DNA of 55,619 nucleotides, from NCBI RefSeq assembly GCF_000315625.1, contig NW_005434440.1:1-55619 (forward strand), read 5' to 3'. Positions 25,201-47,490 of this stretch are shown here, piece by piece (within the stretch, counting starts at the first letter, position 1; each line of letters begins with the position of its first letter). The notes beneath the pieces were generated by a model. It searched no databases. It was not told where the DNA came from and worked only from the letters and a program-made list of their open reading frames with translations. Source of the stretch: Guillardia theta CCMP2712 (Eukaryota; Protista; Cryptophyta). The position numbers and the translations under genes were made by a program.

Positions 25201-28200
25201 TATAGGAGTCGGTTATGAAAGCACTTGTCCGAATGTTTCTCTGTCTTGGGTCGTGATCCAGGTGTCTGTCAACAGCAACTTCGCCCCTCTGATGATCTTC
25301 GCGGGTCGTGATCATGTCAAGCAGGAGGCTGCACAGAGTTGGGTGCTTGTTCGCGGGTTACAGAAAGCAGTCAATTATTTCTTCCGTGCGTTCTCTGACA
25401 ACGTTGTCGGGTCCAGCTTACCCTCAAATGCTCTGAGCAGAAAGGCTGCGGCACCTCCATCTGCTCCCTTCATCAACAGCACAAGCAACGTCAACCCGAA
25501 TGCTATTCTAGTCAACCTGCTTCTTCCTTTGGACACGGGCTACGGGGACACATCGCTTGAGATCATCTCCTATGATCTTCAGTTCTGTCCCTCGCCAGAC
25601 TTTACCGGGAATGGCCTCAAACAGTTTTCATCTCCCCAACTTTCGTTTGAAGGTCAAGGCCTCGTGCCTGGCATCCTCTACTACATCCGAGCTGCTGCTG
25701 TCAGCGCAGCTGGGAGAGGAACGTGGTCACTCGCAGTGTCTCAGGTCTGTGTGGGCGTCCCGTCGGCTCCTCACATCACAACGGCCGTTGTTTCAGGCCC
25801 TCTCACCATCTCCCTCCATTGGACTCGCCCGGCGGATACAGGCGTTGGTCCTGACGCCGCGTACCCGCTCACCCAGTACGCCGTGCAAGTCTCAGCTTCT
25901 AGAAGCTTCGAGGATTATTCCGAGGTAGTCGTAGATTCTGACATGTCCCTGCTCTCTCGGGAGTTCAAGCTAACGAGTGCAAATATCTCTCTCAAGTTTG
26001 AAGCCGGGCAGGTGTACTTCTTCCGGGTAAGAGCGCACAACCTTGTTGGTGCTGGTGCTTTCTCTCAATACAGGACATGTCGTGCAGCGGATCTGCCTTC
26101 ACAACCTCTTGGGTTCAGTTATGTCTTGCAGCAGGGTTACTACATCTTCTCTTGGAAGTGGCCACTTGACACAGGCACGGGAGACAACACTTACCCTCTG
26201 GTGTCGTACGTGCTTCAAGTGAACAACACCAGCTATGAGGTGTTGCCACTAAGAGAAGTCTACCGGTTGTCAACCAATCTATTAGAGCCCAACAGCCTGT
26301 ACGAATTTCGAGTAGTTGCAAAGAATCTAGCAGGAAATGGCCCACCATCCGACTCTCTGTTTGATTCCTTTATCGGACCCTCGCTGCCCCCACTCAACCT
26401 GAAAGCTTTCTTGTGGTCAAGCTCCTCAATTGGCCTAGCTGTCAACCTGACCTGGTCGATGGAGTCCAGTAGGATCGCAAACAGCAGATTGAGTTTCGAG
26501 GTTCAAACGTCTTTGACTTATGACTTCCAAGCTCCTCTTGTTGAATTCACGCCCATGCTGGACAAGCTGTCTTCCTTGTTCCGCTTCACCAAGACAGGGC
26601 TGACAAGCGGAGTCATGAATTACTTCAGAGTCATTGCATTAGCCGACAACGGCTTCAGCCAACCAAGCAACATAGTCAACATTTCTGATCGCTTGATGCC
26701 AGTACTCTTGGATACCATCCCCAAGCTTATCCCATGCCATGGCAACAGTGAAATGAAAATCGTTCTCCGACATTTCGCCTTCGAGCTTGGGAGCGATAGG
26801 AGCAAGTATGGACTGACATTCGATGGCACAGCCGCGACGGTCAATGCGGTGGTGAGGCAGAGCTCAAACCTTGAGGATAACAAACCAATCTTCTCAATCC
26901 TAAGCATCACGTTGGGAGAGAGACAGACTCAGTCGGGAGGAGAAGGTCTCGTTGAATTGTTTTACAACGGTCAGAGCAAGTTGATATTTGCTGTGCCTAG
27001 AGAGATCTGCGAGGCTCCAAAGATCCAATCAGTGCTGGGCAATGGAATCACATACAATCAAACTTTGAAAACGTGGCAAGGCGCTAGATGTGGTCAAAAC
27101 ATAACACTTGGTTTAGCAAGATTGCAGGATGTGACGAGCATTCAATTAGCAATTATTGATAGGAATGTATCGACCTTTGTTCCCTACCTACTTTCTCCAC
27201 AAACAGCAGATACCCTTGAAGGAAGAATTCATTTCCTTCAGTTCAGACTTCCCACAGCTGCATGTTCATCGACAGTCATACAGATTGAACTTCACATGTC
27301 ATCCTTGAACCTCACTTGCGCTCTCTCTGTCGCTCCTGGCACAGGGCACAGTCTGCTTAGTCTTGGACCTGCTTTCATGTATGCAGGGGAGGAATCCAAT
27401 GTCACCCTGGGACTGGCAAGTGAACATCATGAGACGTTGAATGTTTACTTGGAATCCGAACTTCTTGATTGCAACGTTAACCTTTCGATTCCGCTGAGGA
27501 CGTCAATCCGTTGTAAAATACCCGCGATGAATGCGGTTGACTCCCAGTTGAAGCTTCTGCGGGTCGTTGACTTGCAGGCCTCAGTCGTTACAATCGGTTA
27601 CATTGACCTTGTGGTTGATCCCGTGCGATTGTCTTCATTTCTGGCGTATCCTGTCAATGGTGTTGCTATCAACCATTCCCTTTCACTTTACGGTGACCCT
27701 GCAATCTTGCATCAAGACAGTCAAGATGTTCTGTTGTTCGAAGTAGCAACTACTTACAAGAAGATTTCTAGGACTTCAATCATGCATATAAACATTTCCA
27801 ACAACCATTCCCAAACTTTTGCTCTCAGTGGGATGAAAGCTGAATTGATCATGCTTGGGCTGAATACCATTCGCTTCAGATTGAATGTGATCTCCATCTT
27901 GTCTTCTATGACTGAATTCGTGCCTCATGGAGTGTACGCAATCGAAATCGTTTTGTCCAGTGGTGAGAGGCTCAAAAACAAAGAAGCTTTCGTGTGGCTA
28001 CCAGGACAGAAATGCGAGGTGTCGTCTGCTCCAGCTTTTGCTGTTCCAGGGTCCAACCTCTCTCTTCGCTTGAGCCTTCCATCCTGCTTGAACTGCGATC
28101 GACCTGTTCCCAAAAGCCTTTCGTCCCTATCTAACTTGACGGTCAGACTCGGTATCTCGATGGATTCTTGCTCGGACAGGCTCGGAGACTGCGAAACATA

Positions 28201-39661: not shown

Positions 39662-39859
39662 TCATCGATGCCTGCATCCATACTATCGACAGCAACCGTC
39701 AGCTCCGATGTAAAGGGGTTCCGAAGTTCCACTCAAAGCTATCACATACCTCGTCGTAGTTGAACCATCCTATAGACTTGGCGCACTGAGTCAACCAGTC
39801 ACTAAACAAACAAGACCACTATCAACCAACTGTTGGAAACACAATGAACTTACATTCTA
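39662..39859 (-). other. Paralogous copy of the 3' zinc-finger exons of the kinase-PARP gene (3-nt exon AAT, 36-nt exon, YGCRHR* exon)
   Basis: TAG|AAT|GTAAGT (exon 39856-39854); exon 39785-39750 = CAKSIGWFNYDE; exon from 39682 = YGCRHR-stop. These match 44334-44332 (AAT), 44261-44226 (CSKSRGWSDYEQ) and 44168 onward (YGCRHC), with similar intron sequence. Confidence 0.75.
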
Positions 39860-40817
39860 TGAGCATAGGAATAGAACGTTGAAGCCAAAACAAGAACACT
39901 CGGCCTCTCAGTCTCTCACTCGTGGAGCTACTAAACCCGAGCGATCGCCTGGTCTGAGGGTCAAAGGAATATTTTCCCTATCACCTCAGCTGGCAGGACC
40001 GAAAGTCAACACTCGCACAGGCCTTGTAGTGCAGAGAGGTCTTGCAGCGAAATGATGAAAGCACCAGCTGATTGCAAGCTGACAGCTGCTTTGTGGTATC
40101 CAGCCGGTAGCGTAGAGAGACGTGGGCCATGGCGGGCAGACAAGTGATTTGTGTGCTTTTGATAGATAGAGATGATTTACAACTTGCTGTGCACAGTGGA
40201 TCATGAAACATCTCCGAGATCGAATCAATGGTAAGCAAGACGAGACCAAGTTTCTTGCGAGGATGTATGATTGTGTGCGCGGGATCACGACGAGCTAGTC
40301 CTTTGAGCGAATAAGTTTTATCCGAAGATGTTGTATACCAAAGATGTTTCCCACTCCCAGCAACTTGCTGCTCATGTACCCCGTACCTCGTCTTTTGTAT
40401 CACGCACATAACGTCCCAATTTGACCTTGCTCCTCCTCCACCCTCTCTCCTCAGCCTCATCCCTTTCATAACCACCATCATCGTTGTCATCGTCATAGGG
40501 GAAGCAGGAGGAGGAGTAGGACGAAGGTAGGGCGTAAGCTCGGAGGAGGACATTAGACTGCGGCTTTGTAAGGAACGATGGAAAGGCGACATGGAGGAGC
40601 GATGATTTGGCGTGATCATTCTTCCACAAGAGTTTATGAAGCAGTTATAGAAGCCCAAGCGCTTCCTTTCTTCTCGCTGAGAAACAGATGGAGAGATTTC
40701 CAAGCATTCGTCTTCTTGATGCTTTCTCTCTCTGACATCCTGTTTGACTGACGTCCATGACTCTTTGGAAACAATTGCTACTGTCCACGAAATCGGGTAT
40801 TCGCAATAAGCATAAGC

Positions 40818-43800
40818 CTACACTCGACGGAACTCAACAAGGAACTCAGGGTATGTCTGTCGCCGGTCGTAGACGATGAACTCCCTGTACTTTTGCAAGA
40901 ACGCTGAAGGATGCGTATCCTGTGTCACCCCAATCACTGAGTCATGCAGGCGGTCACTGCCCGGCATTACTGGTGGTCGCCTCGCGTTGTTCATCGCTTG
41001 CAGGGCCTCGTAAGGCGTCCCCAGCACAGCTCGCACCACAAACATACGACAGATCCCGCGGCTGTCTGGCGTGCAGTACTCGTCGCTCTTGCTCGAGTTC
41101 TCAGCCAGGTAGATCCCAGCTCCAAACAAGCCTTCTAGACTGCAGACCCGCTCGTCAAGCCCAGCCTTCAAGATAACATCCGCCATGTCGTGTTTGGTGC
41201 CATGGAACAGCAACACCTCGTTGCTGGTCTTATCCTGAAGGAGAGACTTTTTCATCCAATCTTTCCACGTACTCACCTTGGTCTTGGGGTGTCGTTTGCC
41301 CTGTAGCATCATGAGGTAGCCTGTAGCCTTTCGCTGTAGGGCATATGCCGACCACAACTCCGAGTGCTCTATACGGAAGACCCGCTCCACGTTGTAGCCT
41401 TTATGCTTCAATCCCAAGTTGTCTCTTCCTTGGCCGATGTACTGCGACTTACATGTCGATGTCATGAGCTCTTGTATCTTGTCCTTCCACTCGCGTGTGA
41501 CGTCGACTTTGATGTCCGTGCTCGCGGAGCTTGCTCGACCCTGCCAATAGTAGGGAGCTTTCAGTACGGCACGATCGTGTGCCAGAAGCAGCTTCTCTGT
41601 CTCTAAATCTCTCGCTTTTCGTTCAAGCTCGGCCTCTTGCTTGCTCAAGGTCGTCAGCTCCGACTGCACCTGACGCTTTTGCTCATTCAGAAGCCTCTCT
41701 TGTTGGCTAAGCTCTGCCTTCTCCTTGTGCAGTTGTTCCTTCCTCGACTTGGCGTCGTGTTCAAGTTGCTTTCCTTTCGAGATCAGCTCTCGCTGCTGCT
41801 TCACCAGCTGCCTCTCTTCAAGGTTCATGCGCTCCATGCGCTGATTGATGTCCCTCTCCCTCTCTGCAAGCTCATCTTGCCTGCTCACAAGCAACGCAAG
41901 CTGTCGATCTTGCTGTTCGCGCATGGCAGTACGCTCTTTGTCGACATGTTCGCGCTCGAGTATCATGGCATGACTGAAGTATCGATGTGTGAGAGCCTCA
42001 GCTGATGAAGGCCTGTTGTTCGGAAGAGGATCGATGAGTCTAGAAACAAGATTCTTTGCCTCGTCTTCAAGTCCCGACAGCAATGCCGTGGTTTGATTGC
42101 GCTGTGACCCGCTTGTTGAAGCTTCTGTCAAGAATTCAAGCATCACCAAGCCAAACGAGTACATGTCTGATTTGTGCGAAACTTTCTTCGTGCTTGAGGT
42201 AGGATTGATCAGCTCCGGAGCCATGTAGTTCAGCGTGCCCACGGCAAGAGTTGTGGTCACTGTCGCTGCCAGGTCTTTAGCACGGTCCTCCTGCTCCTTG
42301 GACACGTCGAAGTCTGCAATCTTCGGCTCTGCATCCTCTTCTTTGGAAGTCATCATGATGTTTCCGGGCTTGATGTCGCAATGGATGATCCTGTTCTGGC
42401 GCAGGTTCTCGAGTCCTTGCAGCAACTGCATCAGCACCCTGTGTTTCTGCTGGTAACTCGGTTTCACATCCTGCATCCAGATCCAAAGCGTCCCTCCAAC
42501 AAGGAATGGCATCTTCAGGTATCCCTTCAAGACCATCAGCCCATGCTCGTTCGTCTCCTCCACAAAAGCACTGCTCAGCTGCATGATGTACGGGTGCTCC
42601 AAGCGACGCAAGATGCTTGCTTCTCGCAGGAAATGCTTCCTTCCTCTCTCGCTGTCCGAGATGCTGTATTCTTTGATGACATACTTTTCACCTCCTTCTT
42701 TGACGACCATCACATTGTGTCTGGCCCCCATCTGCCCAAGTTGCGACAGCCGGTCTACCACTTGAAACATGTCGATCTTCTCATGATCGATTACAAAATC
42801 ATTGATAGCAGCACCAGCCTCGAGTTGCATCTCTTCCTTCAACTCATTTCTGTACTCAGGATAGTGACAGATGATGCTCCAAAGCGTTGACTCCATCCTC
42901 TCAAGCTCCTTGTTGCTTGCCAAGAGGTTTGTTCTGACCGCATCTATCTTCTCCTCAACCTCCTGGTACGCTAACTTCTTCCTCTTGCACCTTTCCAAGT
43001 CAGATTTATGATCAAAAAGCTCGTCTTCCAGGCACTCAATAGTCTTCTTTAGCTCTGCCCTGGTATTGATCAAATGCTGCGGGTCTTCTAAGCTCTGAAA
43101 CACCTTGTTGTACCTTTCCAATGATTCTACGTCTGATATCTGACCCAACTCGAAAAGCACAGACTCTGCCCATGACAAGGCCTTCTTCTGAACTGTAAGC
43201 AACATGCTTAGGGGAAACGTTTCGATCAAAGAGCTGTCTATCCACACTTCCTCCTCGGACACAAACGCTGCTTCAAGCGCCATGTGCGTCTCCGGCAGAG
43301 CGTCTTCCAACTTGCTCGTATCGTCGACGCTCAACCCAGTGGAGCTTCCATCCAGCATACAAGAGAGCTGACGTAAACTGTCGGCATATCGGATTGCGAT
43401 CTTTGTCCTCTCCTCCCTTGCAGATGCCAGCCTCCCATTCACGGTCTCAACCCACACTGATACCATCGACTTTGTTTCTTGTAGCTGCTGTCGAAGATCA
43501 TCTGTACAAGGACAGTATGAGCCTGCAGCTTGCTGTCCATGGCTTGAAGAGCTTGAATCTGCTGCAAAGCACCTTGAAAACGACTCGATTTTGCCTGCAA
43601 TCTTCTCCAACGACTCCCTGTAACCCAGTAAGCAAGCCTTAGAACCACCTTTTAACGCAACCAGCTCGTCAGATTCCCGTATCAGCTTAGCCCTGGTCTT
43701 GTTCCTCCTGTCTATGCCCGTACCTCCCCTCATGACCTCAGCTTGCGCAGCATCAAGCTCATCCTGCAACGACCGCACTTGCCTCCAAGCCTGCTGCATA

Positions 43801-46142
43801 CGCACGTACGCTTCGTGCCCCTTGCTGCTCAGTATGTCCACCAATTCAAGCAGCAATCCGTAGGCCCCTTCTCCTGAGGCGAGCTCACGGCTGCATATCT
43901 TCTCTGTCAGGTCATGCAGTGATAGCTTCAATGAACCCTCCGAGCCCACGGATGATCCATGACGCCTGGCTAGCTTGACCGCAGATCGCAGGGTGCTGCA
44001 CTTGTCCACGTGGTCGAAACGCTCCCGCTCCTCTTGTTCCTCCCTCTCCTTGCGCTGCTGCTCCTCCCTCTCCTTGCGCTGCTGCTCCTCCCTCTCCTTG
44101 CGCTGCTGCTCCTCCCTCTCCTTGCGCTCCTCCTCTTGCAGCTTTTCCTTGCAATGTCTGCACCCGTACTACCAAGAGCACACGTCACAGGAGACTCACG
44201 CGCATCACTCAAACCAATCATACACCTGCTCATAGTCGGACCATCCTCGAGATTTGGAGCACTGAGTCAACCAATCAATACCAACAAAACCTCTAAAGAC
44301 CATGTGCTTTGAAACATCATCGATGACTTACATTCTGTGAGTTTCCCAATGCATAATGCAATCACAACAAGGTCAGATCAGCAGGAAGATATGTGATGGT
44401 GTCAAATTCTTACGCAGCACTAGTAGATCCATACCAGATGTCGCCATTCGTTGATCAAGACATACCAGAAAAAGAAAAATGAATGTCAATCCCTACCGAC
44501 CGCATGTTTCAATCGAGATATTACTTACAAGCTATCCAGCCCCATCACACCACCCATCCGATGACAAGTCCAGAAGATAAACGGAAAACGTCAGCCAATC
44601 GTCCCCTGACCGCATATTTCATAATCATCACTTACCGACTGTCCGGACAAATCAACAACCCATCCGATTAGAAACCAAGAAAAAACACAGAAAATGTCAG
44701 CCAAATCGTCCCCTGACCGCATGTTTCATAATGCTACTTACTCCCTATGCAGACCGATTTCATCCATCCAAGCAACGAAAGAGCAGCAAGAATTGAAAAG
44801 AAAGTCAGTCCCTATCGTCCCCTGAGCATCTTTCATCGTTGTTACTTACATACTATCCAGCCCCATTCACAACCCATCCGATGAGATAACCCCAAAATAC
44901 ACACAAAATGTCAGCCTATCGTCCCCTGAGCACATCATTATGATATGACACTTACTCCCTATGAAGACGAATTTAATCCATGCAAGCAAGGAAAAACCAG
45001 GGATTTGCAAAATACATGTCAGCCAATCATCCCCTGAGCGCGTATTTCTGATTGTGACTTACATTCTATCCAGCCCGATACACGACCCATCCGATGAGAA
45101 ACCGAAGAATGCACCAAAAATTTCAGCCCAATCGTTCACTGACCGCGTCTTTCATTATCATAACTTACTCGCTGTTGAGACCCATGATCAATCCATTCGA
45201 GCAGGAAACAAAGGAAATCGCAAAAATAAATGTCAGACAATCGTCCCCTGACTGCAGCTTTCATATTCGTCACTTACCAGCTATCCAGACCCAAGTTTCA
45301 TCCATCCGAGCAAAAAAGCGATGAGATTTGCAAAGTACATGTCAGCCAATCGTCCCCTGAGCACATCATTATGATATGACACTTACTCCCTATGAAGACG
45401 AATTTAATCCATGCAAGCAAGGAAAAACCAGGGATTTGCAAAATACTTGTCAGCCAATCATCCCCTGACCGCATCTTTCATCATTGTTACTTACATACTA
45501 TCCAGCCACATTCACGACCCGACCGACGATAATCCCAGAAATTTGCAAATCCACATGTCAGCCAATCGTCCCTTGACCGCATGTTTCATTGTCATCACTT
45601 ACCCACTGTCCAGCATCATCGATGGTCCATCCGAGCAAAAACCAACAAGAAAGCAAACCAAATGTCAGCCATATCGTCCCCTGACCGCATCTTTCATCAT
45701 CGTTACTTACCAGCTATCCAGCCCAAGTCACGACCCGACGGATGACAAACCAACAAAATTGCAAAACCAAATGTCAGTCTCTATCGTCCTCTGAGCATAT
45801 GCTGCACAGACTGATGCTTACCGCCTTCCGAATAACAACATTGCAATTCACGGCAGAACGTAAAACACTCAAAGTCAGGTGACGCCTACTGGAAGCTATT
45901 CAAATTACGCATTTTGTGCTGTCGTTGGTATCATATTCGATCACGATCTGGAGAAACACAAGTCAGAAGGTCAAAAAAGTGTTATGAGGAAGTGAAGGAG
46001 CCGCCAAGAAAGGAGTTGAATGATGGAAGGATCAGATGCGGGGGAGCAAAGGAAACATCTCCATCATCAAACATGTCACTCAAGGTAACAGCATCTCATC
46101 GCAGCTGCTCCTTGCCTGGCAATTAGAGCAGTTGTACGGCAT
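40818..46142 (-). CDS. GATA-like zinc finger - coiled coil - Ser/Thr kinase - coiled coil - PARP catalytic domain protein (~1166 aa, 19 exons incl. 15 microexons)
   Basis: Main exon 44168-40818 carries a kinase (YVIKEY, HCDIKPGN, DFD, GTLNYMAPE, DMYSFG) and a PARP domain (LLFHGTK, GLFGAGIYLAENSSKS, KYREFIVYD). Predicted 5' exons: 46142-46116 (MPYNCSNCQ, GC-AG donor CAG|GCAAG), 45947-45909, thirteen consecutive 3-nt exons between 45824 and 44529, 44419-44414, 44334-44332, 44261-44226. All introns are phase 0. The main exon is high confidence; the 5' exons are inferred from splice signals. Confidence 0.8.
44038..44127 (-). repeat. 24-bp coding tandem repeat (QQRKEREE), ~3.7 copies
   Basis: Plus-strand unit TCCTCCCTCTCCTTGCGCTGCTGC, in frame upstream of the track ORF 40818..44009. 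Confidence 0.9.
44326..45908 (-). repeat. Tandem array of ~103-109-nt homologous spliceosomal introns (outer introns 79 and 84 nt) separated by 3-nt microexons
   Basis: Plus-strand ACTTAC-NNN-CT(A/G), i.e. minus-strand YAG|NNN|GTAAGT, at 44326, 44523, 44630, 44736, 44844, 44950, 45057, 45163, 45272, 45381, 45489, 45597 and 45705. Variants occur at 45816 (AAG|GCG|GTAAGC) and 44408 (TAG|TGCTGC|GTAAGA). A conserved GCTGAC-type branch motif is present in nearly every unit. Confidence 0.9.
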
Positions 46143-46769: not shown

Positions 46770-47490
46770 TCTTGTCCCGGCTGCTTCCCCCCCTCTTGTC
46801 CCGGCTGCCCCCCCCCCTCTTGTCCCGGCTGCTCCCCCCCACACCTGTCCTCCTTCCATCACCATGCTCCTTCTTCCTCTTGCTCTTGCCCAGGCTCCTC
46901 CTTCCATCGCCATGCTCCTTCTTCCTCTTGCTCTTGCCCCGGCTCCTCCTTCCATCACCATGCTCCTTCTTCCTCTTGCTCTTGCCCCGGCTCCTCCTTC
47001 CATCGCCATGCTCCTTCTTCCTCTTGTTCTTGCCCCGGCTCCTCCTTCCATCACCATGCTCTTCTTCCTCTGCTCTTGCCCCGGGCTCCTCCTTCCATCG
47101 CCATGCTCCTTCTTCCTCTTGCTCTTGCCCCGGCTCCTCCTTCCATCACCATGCTCCTTCTTCCTCTTGCTCTTGCCCCGGCTCCTCCTTCCATCACCAT
47201 GCTCCTTCTTCCTCTTGCTCTTGCCCCGGCTCCTCCTTCCATCGCCATGCTCCTTCTTCCTCTTGCTCTTGCCCCGGCTCCTCCTTCCATCACCATGCTC
47301 CTTCTTCCTCTTGTTCTTGCCCCGGCTCCTCCTTCCATCACCATGCTCCTTCTTCCTCTTGCTCTTGCCCCGGCTCCTCCTTCCATCACCATGCTCCTTC
47401 TTCCTCTTGCTCTTGCCCCGGCTCCTCCTTCCATCACCATGCTCCTTCTTCCTCTTGTTCTTGCCCCGGCTCCTCCTTCCATTGCCATGC
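46770..47490. repeat. Minisatellites: 24-bp unit x3 followed by 48-bp unit x~13
   Basis: TCTTGTCCCGGCTGCYYCCCCCCC x3 (46770-46840). CCTCCTTCCATCRCCATGCTCCTTCTTCCTCTTGYTCTTGCCCCGGCT x~13 (46849-47490), with one indel-bearing unit near 47060. Confidence 0.95.

Follow-up and report, generated by a model that had tools for sequence, protein, structure and literature searches.

In the textbook view, recognition is difficult for internal exons much shorter than about 50 nt, and a 3-nt microexon on its own is regarded as a curiosity that depends on dedicated enhancers. At ratchet points, i.e., the recursive splice sites of Drosophila Ubx and of long vertebrate introns, YAG and GTRAGT are juxtaposed. 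The present analysis concerns the minus strand of contig NW_005434440.1 of Guillardia theta CCMP2712 (positions 1 to 55,619, i.e., 55,619 nt, hereafter called the window), where 13 tandem units of ~108 bp each are found at 45826-44529. Each unit has the structure of an intron followed by a single codon. The array is probably a genuine coding segment of a gene with kinase and PARP domains. It would encode a fast-evolving loop between cysteines, changed by the recombination of intron-plus-codon cassettes.

The junctions of the array resemble ratchet points in that a 3' splice site and a strong 5' splice site lie side by side and in that the introns are probably removed stepwise. Ratchet points, however, belong to very long introns and leave nothing (or an exon removed later) in the mRNA. 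Here the introns are short and 3 nt stay, as found at 180 of the 189 junctions of the gene family and seen in the RNA of paralogues.

Schistosoma has micro-exon genes (MEGs) in which 10-20 symmetric exons of very small size follow one another; the frame is kept when any of them is gained, lost or skipped, and the genes form fast-evolving families overlooked by automatic annotation (bioRxiv 10.1101/2023.06.21.545858). Their exons are mostly of 6-81 bp (the majority of 15 bp) and their introns of 0.1-5 kb (bioRxiv 10.1101/2023.06.21.545858). The window gene shares with them a run of short exons in multiples of 3. It differs from them on two points: (i) the micro-exons of MEGs make up most of a small secreted protein, while the array corresponds to a 13-residue loop of an intracellular-type signalling protein and the micro-exons to 48 nt of about 3,500; (ii) the introns of MEGs are long and mutually unrelated, while those of the window are tandem copies of ~105 nt and the exons between them consist of one codon.

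In animals, 3-nt microexons exist singly, e.g., the 3-bp microexon of RPS24 (PMC12207440). With these the present exons would share that 3 nt are recognisable and included. Nevertheless, the animal exons are isolated, regulated and surrounded by long unrelated introns, in contrast to chains of 13-30 built from a repeat. Introners also give many near-identical introns in one genome, but they are dispersed singly by transposition into unrelated genes. The present introns lie head-to-tail, in one family and at one protein position, and exon 2 and the TGCTGY-AAT tail recur in all flanks inspected. Lastly, the SNORD115/116 host genes are made of tandem exon-intron repeat units too, but they are non-coding with a small nucleolar RNA (snoRNA) in each intron, whereas in-frame codons are found here and neither an RNA family nor a stable fold.

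No description of serial one-codon exons, of arrays of them in Guillardia or of tandemly amplified intron-codon units was found in the full-text literature searched. This agrees with a preliminary description of the window, made from the sequence alone, according to which no run of 13 one-codon exons had been described. The array is an extreme variant of micro-exon architecture, new relative to the literature searched.

Structure of the array

The strand was read directly and the region 44100-46100 was scanned for AG-NNN-GTRAG. Each unit is a complete intron, i.e., donor GTAAGT, conserved CTGAC at ~60 nt before the end, AG-free zone and YAG, after which come exactly 3 nt. The triplets are, in order, GCG, CTG, TGG, TAT, GGA, CTG, CGA, AAT, GGA, TAT, GGA, TCG and CTT. 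All 13 are preceded by AG and followed by a donor, which is GTAAGT in 12 of 13 units and GTAAGC in one (after the first triplet). Downstream of them come a 6-nt exon, TGCTGC, and a 3-nt exon, AAT. The gene thus has an unbroken series of 15 exons, each of 3 or 6 nt and each in phase 0, and no triplet is a stop. The preliminary description had placed these 13 triplets, TGCTGC (44419-44414) and AAT (44334-44332) and had proposed phase 0 throughout without stop; all of this was recovered, the triplets to the base. Its general layout of the unit is right except that the first donor is GTAAGC and that the intron preceding GCG (intron 2, 45908-45825, GTAATT..AAG, 84 nt) does not belong to the repeat.

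Introns 3-15 have 103-109 nt each, and the mean intron of Guillardia theta has 106 nt (PMC6260743, Table 1). In 12 of the 13 units, CTGAC, CTGAA or TTGAC is localized at -58 to -67 and AG is absent from there to the 3' splice site. The sole exception is intron 6 (45494-45390), with a single AG directly after the branch-type motif. In the window, 15 occurrences of the pattern YAG-NNN-GTRAGT were counted where 1.46 would be expected, and not one of 100 shuffles reached 15.

Tandem Repeats Finder gives a period of 108 bp over 44586-45794 (11.2 copies, 66% matches) and higher-order periods of 214-216 and 431 (71-75% matches). The latter mean that the array was enlarged partly by duplication of 2- and 4-unit blocks. 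The copies of the unit lie head-to-tail, as in a minisatellite. A coding repeat of 108 bp (36 amino acids) was considered and rejected: stops are present in every frame of the unit, and the unit lengths are evenly distributed over the residues modulo 3.

The array family in the genome

The genome searched comprises 87,145,349 bases in 669 pieces. It contains about 30 such arrays, which belong to one gene family, and sister arrays are found on more than 25 scaffolds. A 4-unit probe has 90 matches on about 18 scaffolds, all within tandem arrays. A pattern independent of the sequence, i.e., two junctions 85-112 nt apart, is found at 194 places against 4 for the reversed control; such a genome-wide search had been suggested in the preliminary description, and the sister arrays expected from it do exist.

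Family statistics were obtained from 21 loci parsed by script. Among 189 in-chain junctions, 180 have AG exactly 3 nt before the donor and the other 9 correspond to exons of 6 nt (TGCTGY) or 9 nt. The family triplets include 39 different codons. Unit lengths modulo 3 are distributed as 61:61:58, hence the frame constrains only the spacing of the exon, and not the unit.

Between paralogues, the arrays vary in the order and number of their units (about 5 to 30). The tail keeps the same order: TGCTGY, AAT or AAC, a C..GW..Y exon and a GC..CK exon. In seven arrays (C116, C75, C92, C56, C60, C12 and C33) the intron bodies have diverged while layout and tail are kept, which bears out, at the scale of the family, the earlier remark that splice signals and 3-nt spacing outlast the intron bodies. 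The layout kept despite such divergence (C116, C75, C12, C60) counts in favour of a coding array. The longest array (L041, G000:C116:129876-134120) consists of about 30 exons of one codon, among which TGG, CTG and CTT (Trp/Leu) are frequent. Its introns are purine-rich (GA-rich) and have in common with the window units only GTAAGT, CTGAC, TTTGCAAC and YAG. The composition is array-specific: C116 is rich in Trp and Leu, C75 in Tyr, Gly and Asp. Five loci (L021, L022, L033, L034 and L040) are modular, i.e., ordinary exons of ~90 nt (x-T-F-D-x-G-x-D-G-K-C-x-x-C..C-Y) alternate with further arrays, thus one protein can have two or three variable loops. The effector parts differ as well: Roc-COR in paralogue C228, kinase-PARP in the window gene.

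One-codon exons in RNA

The contigs of a 2014 run labelled only 'RNA?' (X1) were compared by reading, codon by codon, with the genomic triplets. X1 behaves as RNA in two respects: a clean canonical joint connects 45947 with 46116 across intron 1 (depth 139), and in the unique intronic bins the depth is zero. The contig that joins 46116 to 45947 has 3 mismatches and hence originates from paralogue C228. X1 contigs anchor on exon 2 of the window because the paralogues share this exon.

Three loose ends of such contigs are informative. (i) After ..AAATGC, the first reads GCG GGG CAT TGG TTT TCG GAA CAC TTC TCG, i.e., one-codon exons 1 to 10 of the C228 array, in order. (ii) After GCG, the second reads ACT GGA ACG CAT CCG TCG GTT GCT ACT TTT, i.e., 7 codons of the C23 array and then nine bases from the start of its next ordinary exon. 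(iii) The third, at 44332, has AAT joined to the C..GW..Y exon of a paralogue. An ordered match of thirty letters is beyond chance; splicing therefore includes the one-codon exons, and does so constitutively in these contigs. This is shown at the level of the family, for paralogues C228 and C23. By homology, the triplets of the window locus are probably spliced in as well.

Several points weigh against this extension to the window and against the coding role of its array. The RNA status of X1 is only the guess of a tool. The X1 contigs localized on exon 2 of the window come from paralogues, their second codon being GGG or ACT and not CTG. The large exon of the window has a depth of 0-3 in X1, with one exact contig of 175 nt (depth 3.1) on the last exon, and X1, in which the window copy is nearly silent, contains no junction specific to that copy. 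X1 is also rich in unspliced or partly spliced pieces of the family, which may point to splicing that is inefficient or under regulation. From the raw RNA run X6 no more than 14 reads were obtained. Formally, the joined triplets of X1 could also come from a processed DNA copy.

The near silence of the window copy, together with the weak donor of intron 2 (GTAATT), would fit a copy that skips the array as a block (from exon 2 to TGCTGC or a later exon) or a paralogue that is decaying or not productively expressed. This is nevertheless unlikely. Donor, branch motif, AG-free zone and acceptor are intact in the window units (apart from the stray AG of intron 6) and no triplet is a stop. The 3.35-kb last exon is open, and its Pfam matches are intact (Pkinase, E=4e-38; PARP, E=5e-21). 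An open exon of 1116 codons with these two domains speaks against a dead gene. Moreover, the paralogues that share exon 2 and intron 2 include every triplet, and no X1 joint leads from 45909 to 44419, 44261 or 44168.

The symmetry of the exons leads to another possibility, namely that single one-codon exons are alternatively skipped, giving many loop variants per gene, i.e., somatic diversity. All exons are in phase 0, so that any subset keeps the frame; the same logic has been proposed for schistosome MEGs (bioRxiv 10.1101/2023.06.21.545858), and Roc-COR and kinase-PARP effector domains resemble in kind those of immune-type proteins. In both informative RNA contigs, however, all codons stand in genomic order and none is skipped (minor isoforms may exist), and the uniformly strong splice signals point to constitutive use. 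Generation of diversity by skipping is thus considered unlikely. The earlier idea of a codon cassette is partly supported, for the splicing-in (in two paralogues) and for the in-frame gain and loss of cassettes, and not for skipping.

Partly processed forms are also present in X1: (i) intron 2 is retained while the downstream codons are already joined; (ii) the 3' part of an intron and GGA are followed by letters that are not intronic; (iii) intron 16 is retained in a contig of 583 nt (depth 180) of a paralogue. The introns would accordingly be removed without a strict 5' to 3' order, and perhaps slowly.

It must be noticed that another X1 contig (115 nt, depth 120; window 45822-45921, minus strand) has exon 1 of a paralogue (..AAT TGC) joined to CAGCACAAAATGC inside exon 2, with intron 2 kept. 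The joint could reflect the use of a second, frame-shifting 3' splice site that lies 29 nt inside exon 2, or else an aberrant product. Runs X2 and X3 were set aside as splicing evidence: introns and exons are covered alike, the repeat-to-repeat joints are non-canonical and the runs look like DNA or unspliced material. Joined triplet forms were not seen in X2 and X3.

Splice signals and codon divergence

The alignment of 180 units has high information at GTAAGT, at a core ending in CTGACAT and at TAG, and about 0 bits in the three exon columns. The donor is GTAAGT in 161 of the 180 units; the acceptors are TAG (152), CAG (21) and AAG (7). CTGAY is localized at a median of -59. From CTGAY to the 3' splice site AG is absent in 162 of 171 units, and in all 10 AG are observed there against about 397 expected from composition. 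Such an AG-exclusion zone is an established mark of a distant branch point. CTGAC would be the branch site, the branch nucleotide being predicted only. The repeat units have consensus donor boundaries, a branch motif and an AG-free stretch, as GT-AG introns do. Across the family, selection has kept the 3-nt spacing, the splice signals and the lack of stops, and the repeat is more than a plain satellite.

The strong conservation of the intron core (TCAGGGGAnGAT..CTGACAT) could also be read in another way: the core would be the true product, i.e., a small or snoRNA-like RNA as in the SNORD115/116 host genes, and the triplets would be incidental. UGAUG-like and CUGA motifs are present in the core, and tandemly repeated snoRNA-host introns are known. 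Nevertheless, no Rfam family is matched (the best hits, with E=1.3 and E=5.6, do not come near the gathering scores) and four introns fold no better than shuffled ones (z from -0.4 to +1.1). In the diverged arrays only CTGAC and the AG-free zone persist, which fits a branch site, and the arrays are always in the coding frame at one protein position. This reading is extremely unlikely.

The codons behave differently from the introns. In pairs of units whose introns are 3-8% different, the triplets are 19-48% different per site. A comparison centred on the codon was made with 27 nt upstream and 24 nt downstream, i.e., flanks of 30 nt minus YAG and GTRAGT. In the closest cassette pairs, codon divergence is 0.34 at a flank divergence of 0.024 and 0.50 at 0.07 (ratios of 14 and 7, respectively); the pairs are non-independent and the contrast is given without P value. 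First, second and third codon positions all show the excess over the flanks. When two units share their codon, their flanks are more alike (0.46 vs. 0.58), thus cassettes are partly inherited together with their codon. Since neutral co-duplication or gene conversion would homogenise both codon and flanks, the larger divergence of the codons points to selection on them, whether diversifying or position-specific.

Some of these observations would be expected from a tolerated minisatellite able to splice itself out, which grows and shrinks neutrally in a permissive loop whose residues have no role. Sequence and length of the loop are not conserved between paralogues, and the higher-order periods correspond to recent block duplication. 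An open downstream frame is enough to explain spacing, splice signals and absence of stops, whether or not the loop residues matter. The absence of stops itself (0 of 180 family triplets vs. ~6% of intron 3-mers, P about 1e-5 if independent) has an optimistic P value, the triplets being copies of one another. Moreover, the quick change of the codons could partly come from constraint on the flanks or from their homogenisation. Set against this, in the closest cassette pairs the divergence of the codons is 7-14 times that of the intron bases beside them, the layout is found at the same protein position even where the intron bodies of the paralogues have diverged beyond recognition, and the composition is specific to each array. 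A neutral minisatellite is thus judged rather unlikely, and an array whose codons are under selection is preferred.

Encoded protein

The array reads A-L-W-Y-G-L-R-N-G-Y-G-S-L, i.e., 13 residues with one exon each, between a conserved Cys and a conserved Cys-Cys-x-Cys. The loop is preceded by ..S-T-K-C and followed by C-C-N-C-S-K-S-R-G-W-S-D-Y-E-Q-Y-G-C-R-H-C-K. It lies inside an N-terminal Cys-rich module, including the CxxC of exon 1, which presumably binds metal. The continuous parts of this module (P0003:1-70, L026:4496-4705 and window 44001-44168) have no Pfam match at E<0.1.

The closest database proteins are from the cryptophyte Hanusia phi and from an MMETSP transcriptome. The transcript protein P0003 of Hanusia phi has a homologous N-terminus with a loop of 7 residues. 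With the whole last exon as query the protein search gave no match, low-complexity words having probably swamped the candidates. With region 100-1116 of the last exon, cryptophyte relatives of at most 55% identity were obtained. The product of the window gene itself is not among these matches, hence there is no transcript-derived protein that confirms the N-terminus of the window.

Proposed mechanism and significance

According to the preferred reading, i.e., a coding array with cassettes that recombine, each intron of ~105 nt would be recognised on its own by intron definition. The near-perfect intron-side U1 site (GTAAGT) would compensate for an exon side free of constraint. The branch would form at CTGAC, ~60 nt upstream, and the first AG past the strictly AG-free zone would be taken as 3' splice site. 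A 3-nt exon is too small for the complexes of its 3' and 5' splice sites together, therefore neighbouring introns are probably removed in succession. As the unit of intron plus codon is also the unit of the tandem repeat, unequal recombination between homologous introns could add, delete and reshuffle whole codons with the frame intact. Selection on the codons would then give about 30 signalling genes (Roc-COR, kinase-PARP) a loop whose length and sequence are hypervariable from gene to gene. A function as hypervariable loop is plausible.

A stronger version of this proposal is a purpose-built variability device, in which the cassettes vary a metal-clamped recognition loop through unequal recombination in the germ line and possibly through alternative inclusion in single cells. 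This is doubtful. If true, (i) the family might serve a unicellular alga as sensors of innate immunity or cell death and (ii) the spliceosome must handle chains of up to about 30 three-nucleotide exons.

Serial runs of 10-30 one-codon exons in one organism represent a new lower bound for the spliceosome in series. They offer a natural system for the study of intron definition, of distant branch points with AG scanning and of the order of intron removal. They also suggest a new route to an evolvable protein segment, i.e., a repeat unit with its own splice sites that expands, contracts and shuffles without frame shift. One-codon exons are missed by gene predictors and standard RNA-seq aligners, so that the N-termini of the family are probably mis-annotated in the reference cryptophyte genome; the related JGI model P0002 starts after the array.

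Gene model and minor observations

The gene model has 19 exons, of 27, 39, 13 x 3, 6, 3, 36 and 3351 nt, and all junctions are in phase 0 (Table 1). The coding sequence has 3,501 nt, i.e., 1,166 codons. It must be noticed that intron 1 (45948-46115) is a GC-AG intron with donor GCAAGG, whose removal is supported by the RNA contig of paralogue C228.

Table 1. Features of the kinase-PARP gene, in the order of transcription (window coordinates).
Feature	Coordinates	Strand	Evidence
Exon 1, 27 nt, ATG at 46142, M-P-Y-N-C-S-N-C-Q (first CxxC)	46116..46142	-	sequence
Intron 1, 168 nt, GC-AG type (GCAAGG..CCAG)	45948..46115	-	X1 joint, depth 138.8, from contig of paralogue C228
Exon 2, 39 nt, I-V-I-E-Y-D-T-N-D-S-T-K-C	45909..45947	-	near-identical exon in C228, C23, C206 and other paralogues
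Intron 2, 84 nt, weak donor GTAATT, acceptor AAG	45825..45908	-	X1 contigs of paralogues, removed and retained forms (loose ends at 45908 and 45821)
One-codon exon GCG (Ala)	45822..45824	-	sequence; GCG exon also read in paralogue RNA
One-codon exon CTG (Leu)	45711..45713	-	sequence
One-codon exon TGG (Trp)	45603..45605	-	sequence
One-codon exon TAT (Tyr)	45495..45497	-	sequence
One-codon exon GGA (Gly)	45387..45389	-	sequence
One-codon exon CTG (Leu)	45278..45280	-	sequence
One-codon exon CGA (Arg)	45169..45171	-	sequence
One-codon exon AAT (Asn)	45063..45065	-	sequence
One-codon exon GGA (Gly)	44956..44958	-	sequence
One-codon exon TAT (Tyr)	44850..44852	-	sequence
One-codon exon GGA (Gly)	44742..44744	-	sequence
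One-codon exon TCG (Ser)	44636..44638	-	sequence
One-codon exon CTT (Leu)	44529..44531	-	sequence
13 homologous introns, 103-109 nt; donor GTAAGT, core TCAGGGGAnGAT..CTGACAT, AG-free zone, YAG	44420..45821	-	repeat and unit alignment
Two-codon exon TGCTGC (Cys-Cys)	44414..44419	-	TGCTGY throughout the family
Intron 16, 79 nt (GTAAGA..CAG)	44335..44413	-	retained in abundant X1 contig of a paralogue
One-codon exon AAT (Asn)	44332..44334	-	AAT or AAC in the family; joined to next exon in paralogue X1 RNA
36-nt exon, C-S-K-S-R-G-W-S-D-Y-E-Q	44226..44261	-	homologous exon in all paralogues and in Hanusia phi protein P0003
Last exon, 3351 nt: Y-G-C-R-H-C-K, charged coiled-coil repeat, protein kinase and PARP catalytic domains	40818..44168	-	open frame, Pfam

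Other repeats are present in and near the gene. Inside the last exon, at window 44038-44135, a 24-bp unit (Q-Q-R-K-E-R-E-E, minus strand) is repeated 4 times and forms a perfect tandem repeat of the coding type. Repeats of the coding type also lie on the other side of the array, upstream of the gene at window 46770-47490, where one unit of 24 bp has 3 copies and another of 48 bp has 13.4 copies (96% identity).

A second, partial tail of the family is localized at window 39690-39935 (minus strand). It has catag-AAT-gtaagt at 39848-39859, then a C-A-K-S-I-G-W-F-N-Y-D-E exon, and ends in Y-G-C-R-H followed by an in-frame TGA; array and TGCTGY exon are absent. This tail stands directly upstream of a separate kinase gene and resembles a relic or a recruited 5' part. 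Lastly, a lone CAG-AGG-GTAAGT site is found at window 26189-26200 (minus strand), distant from the array.

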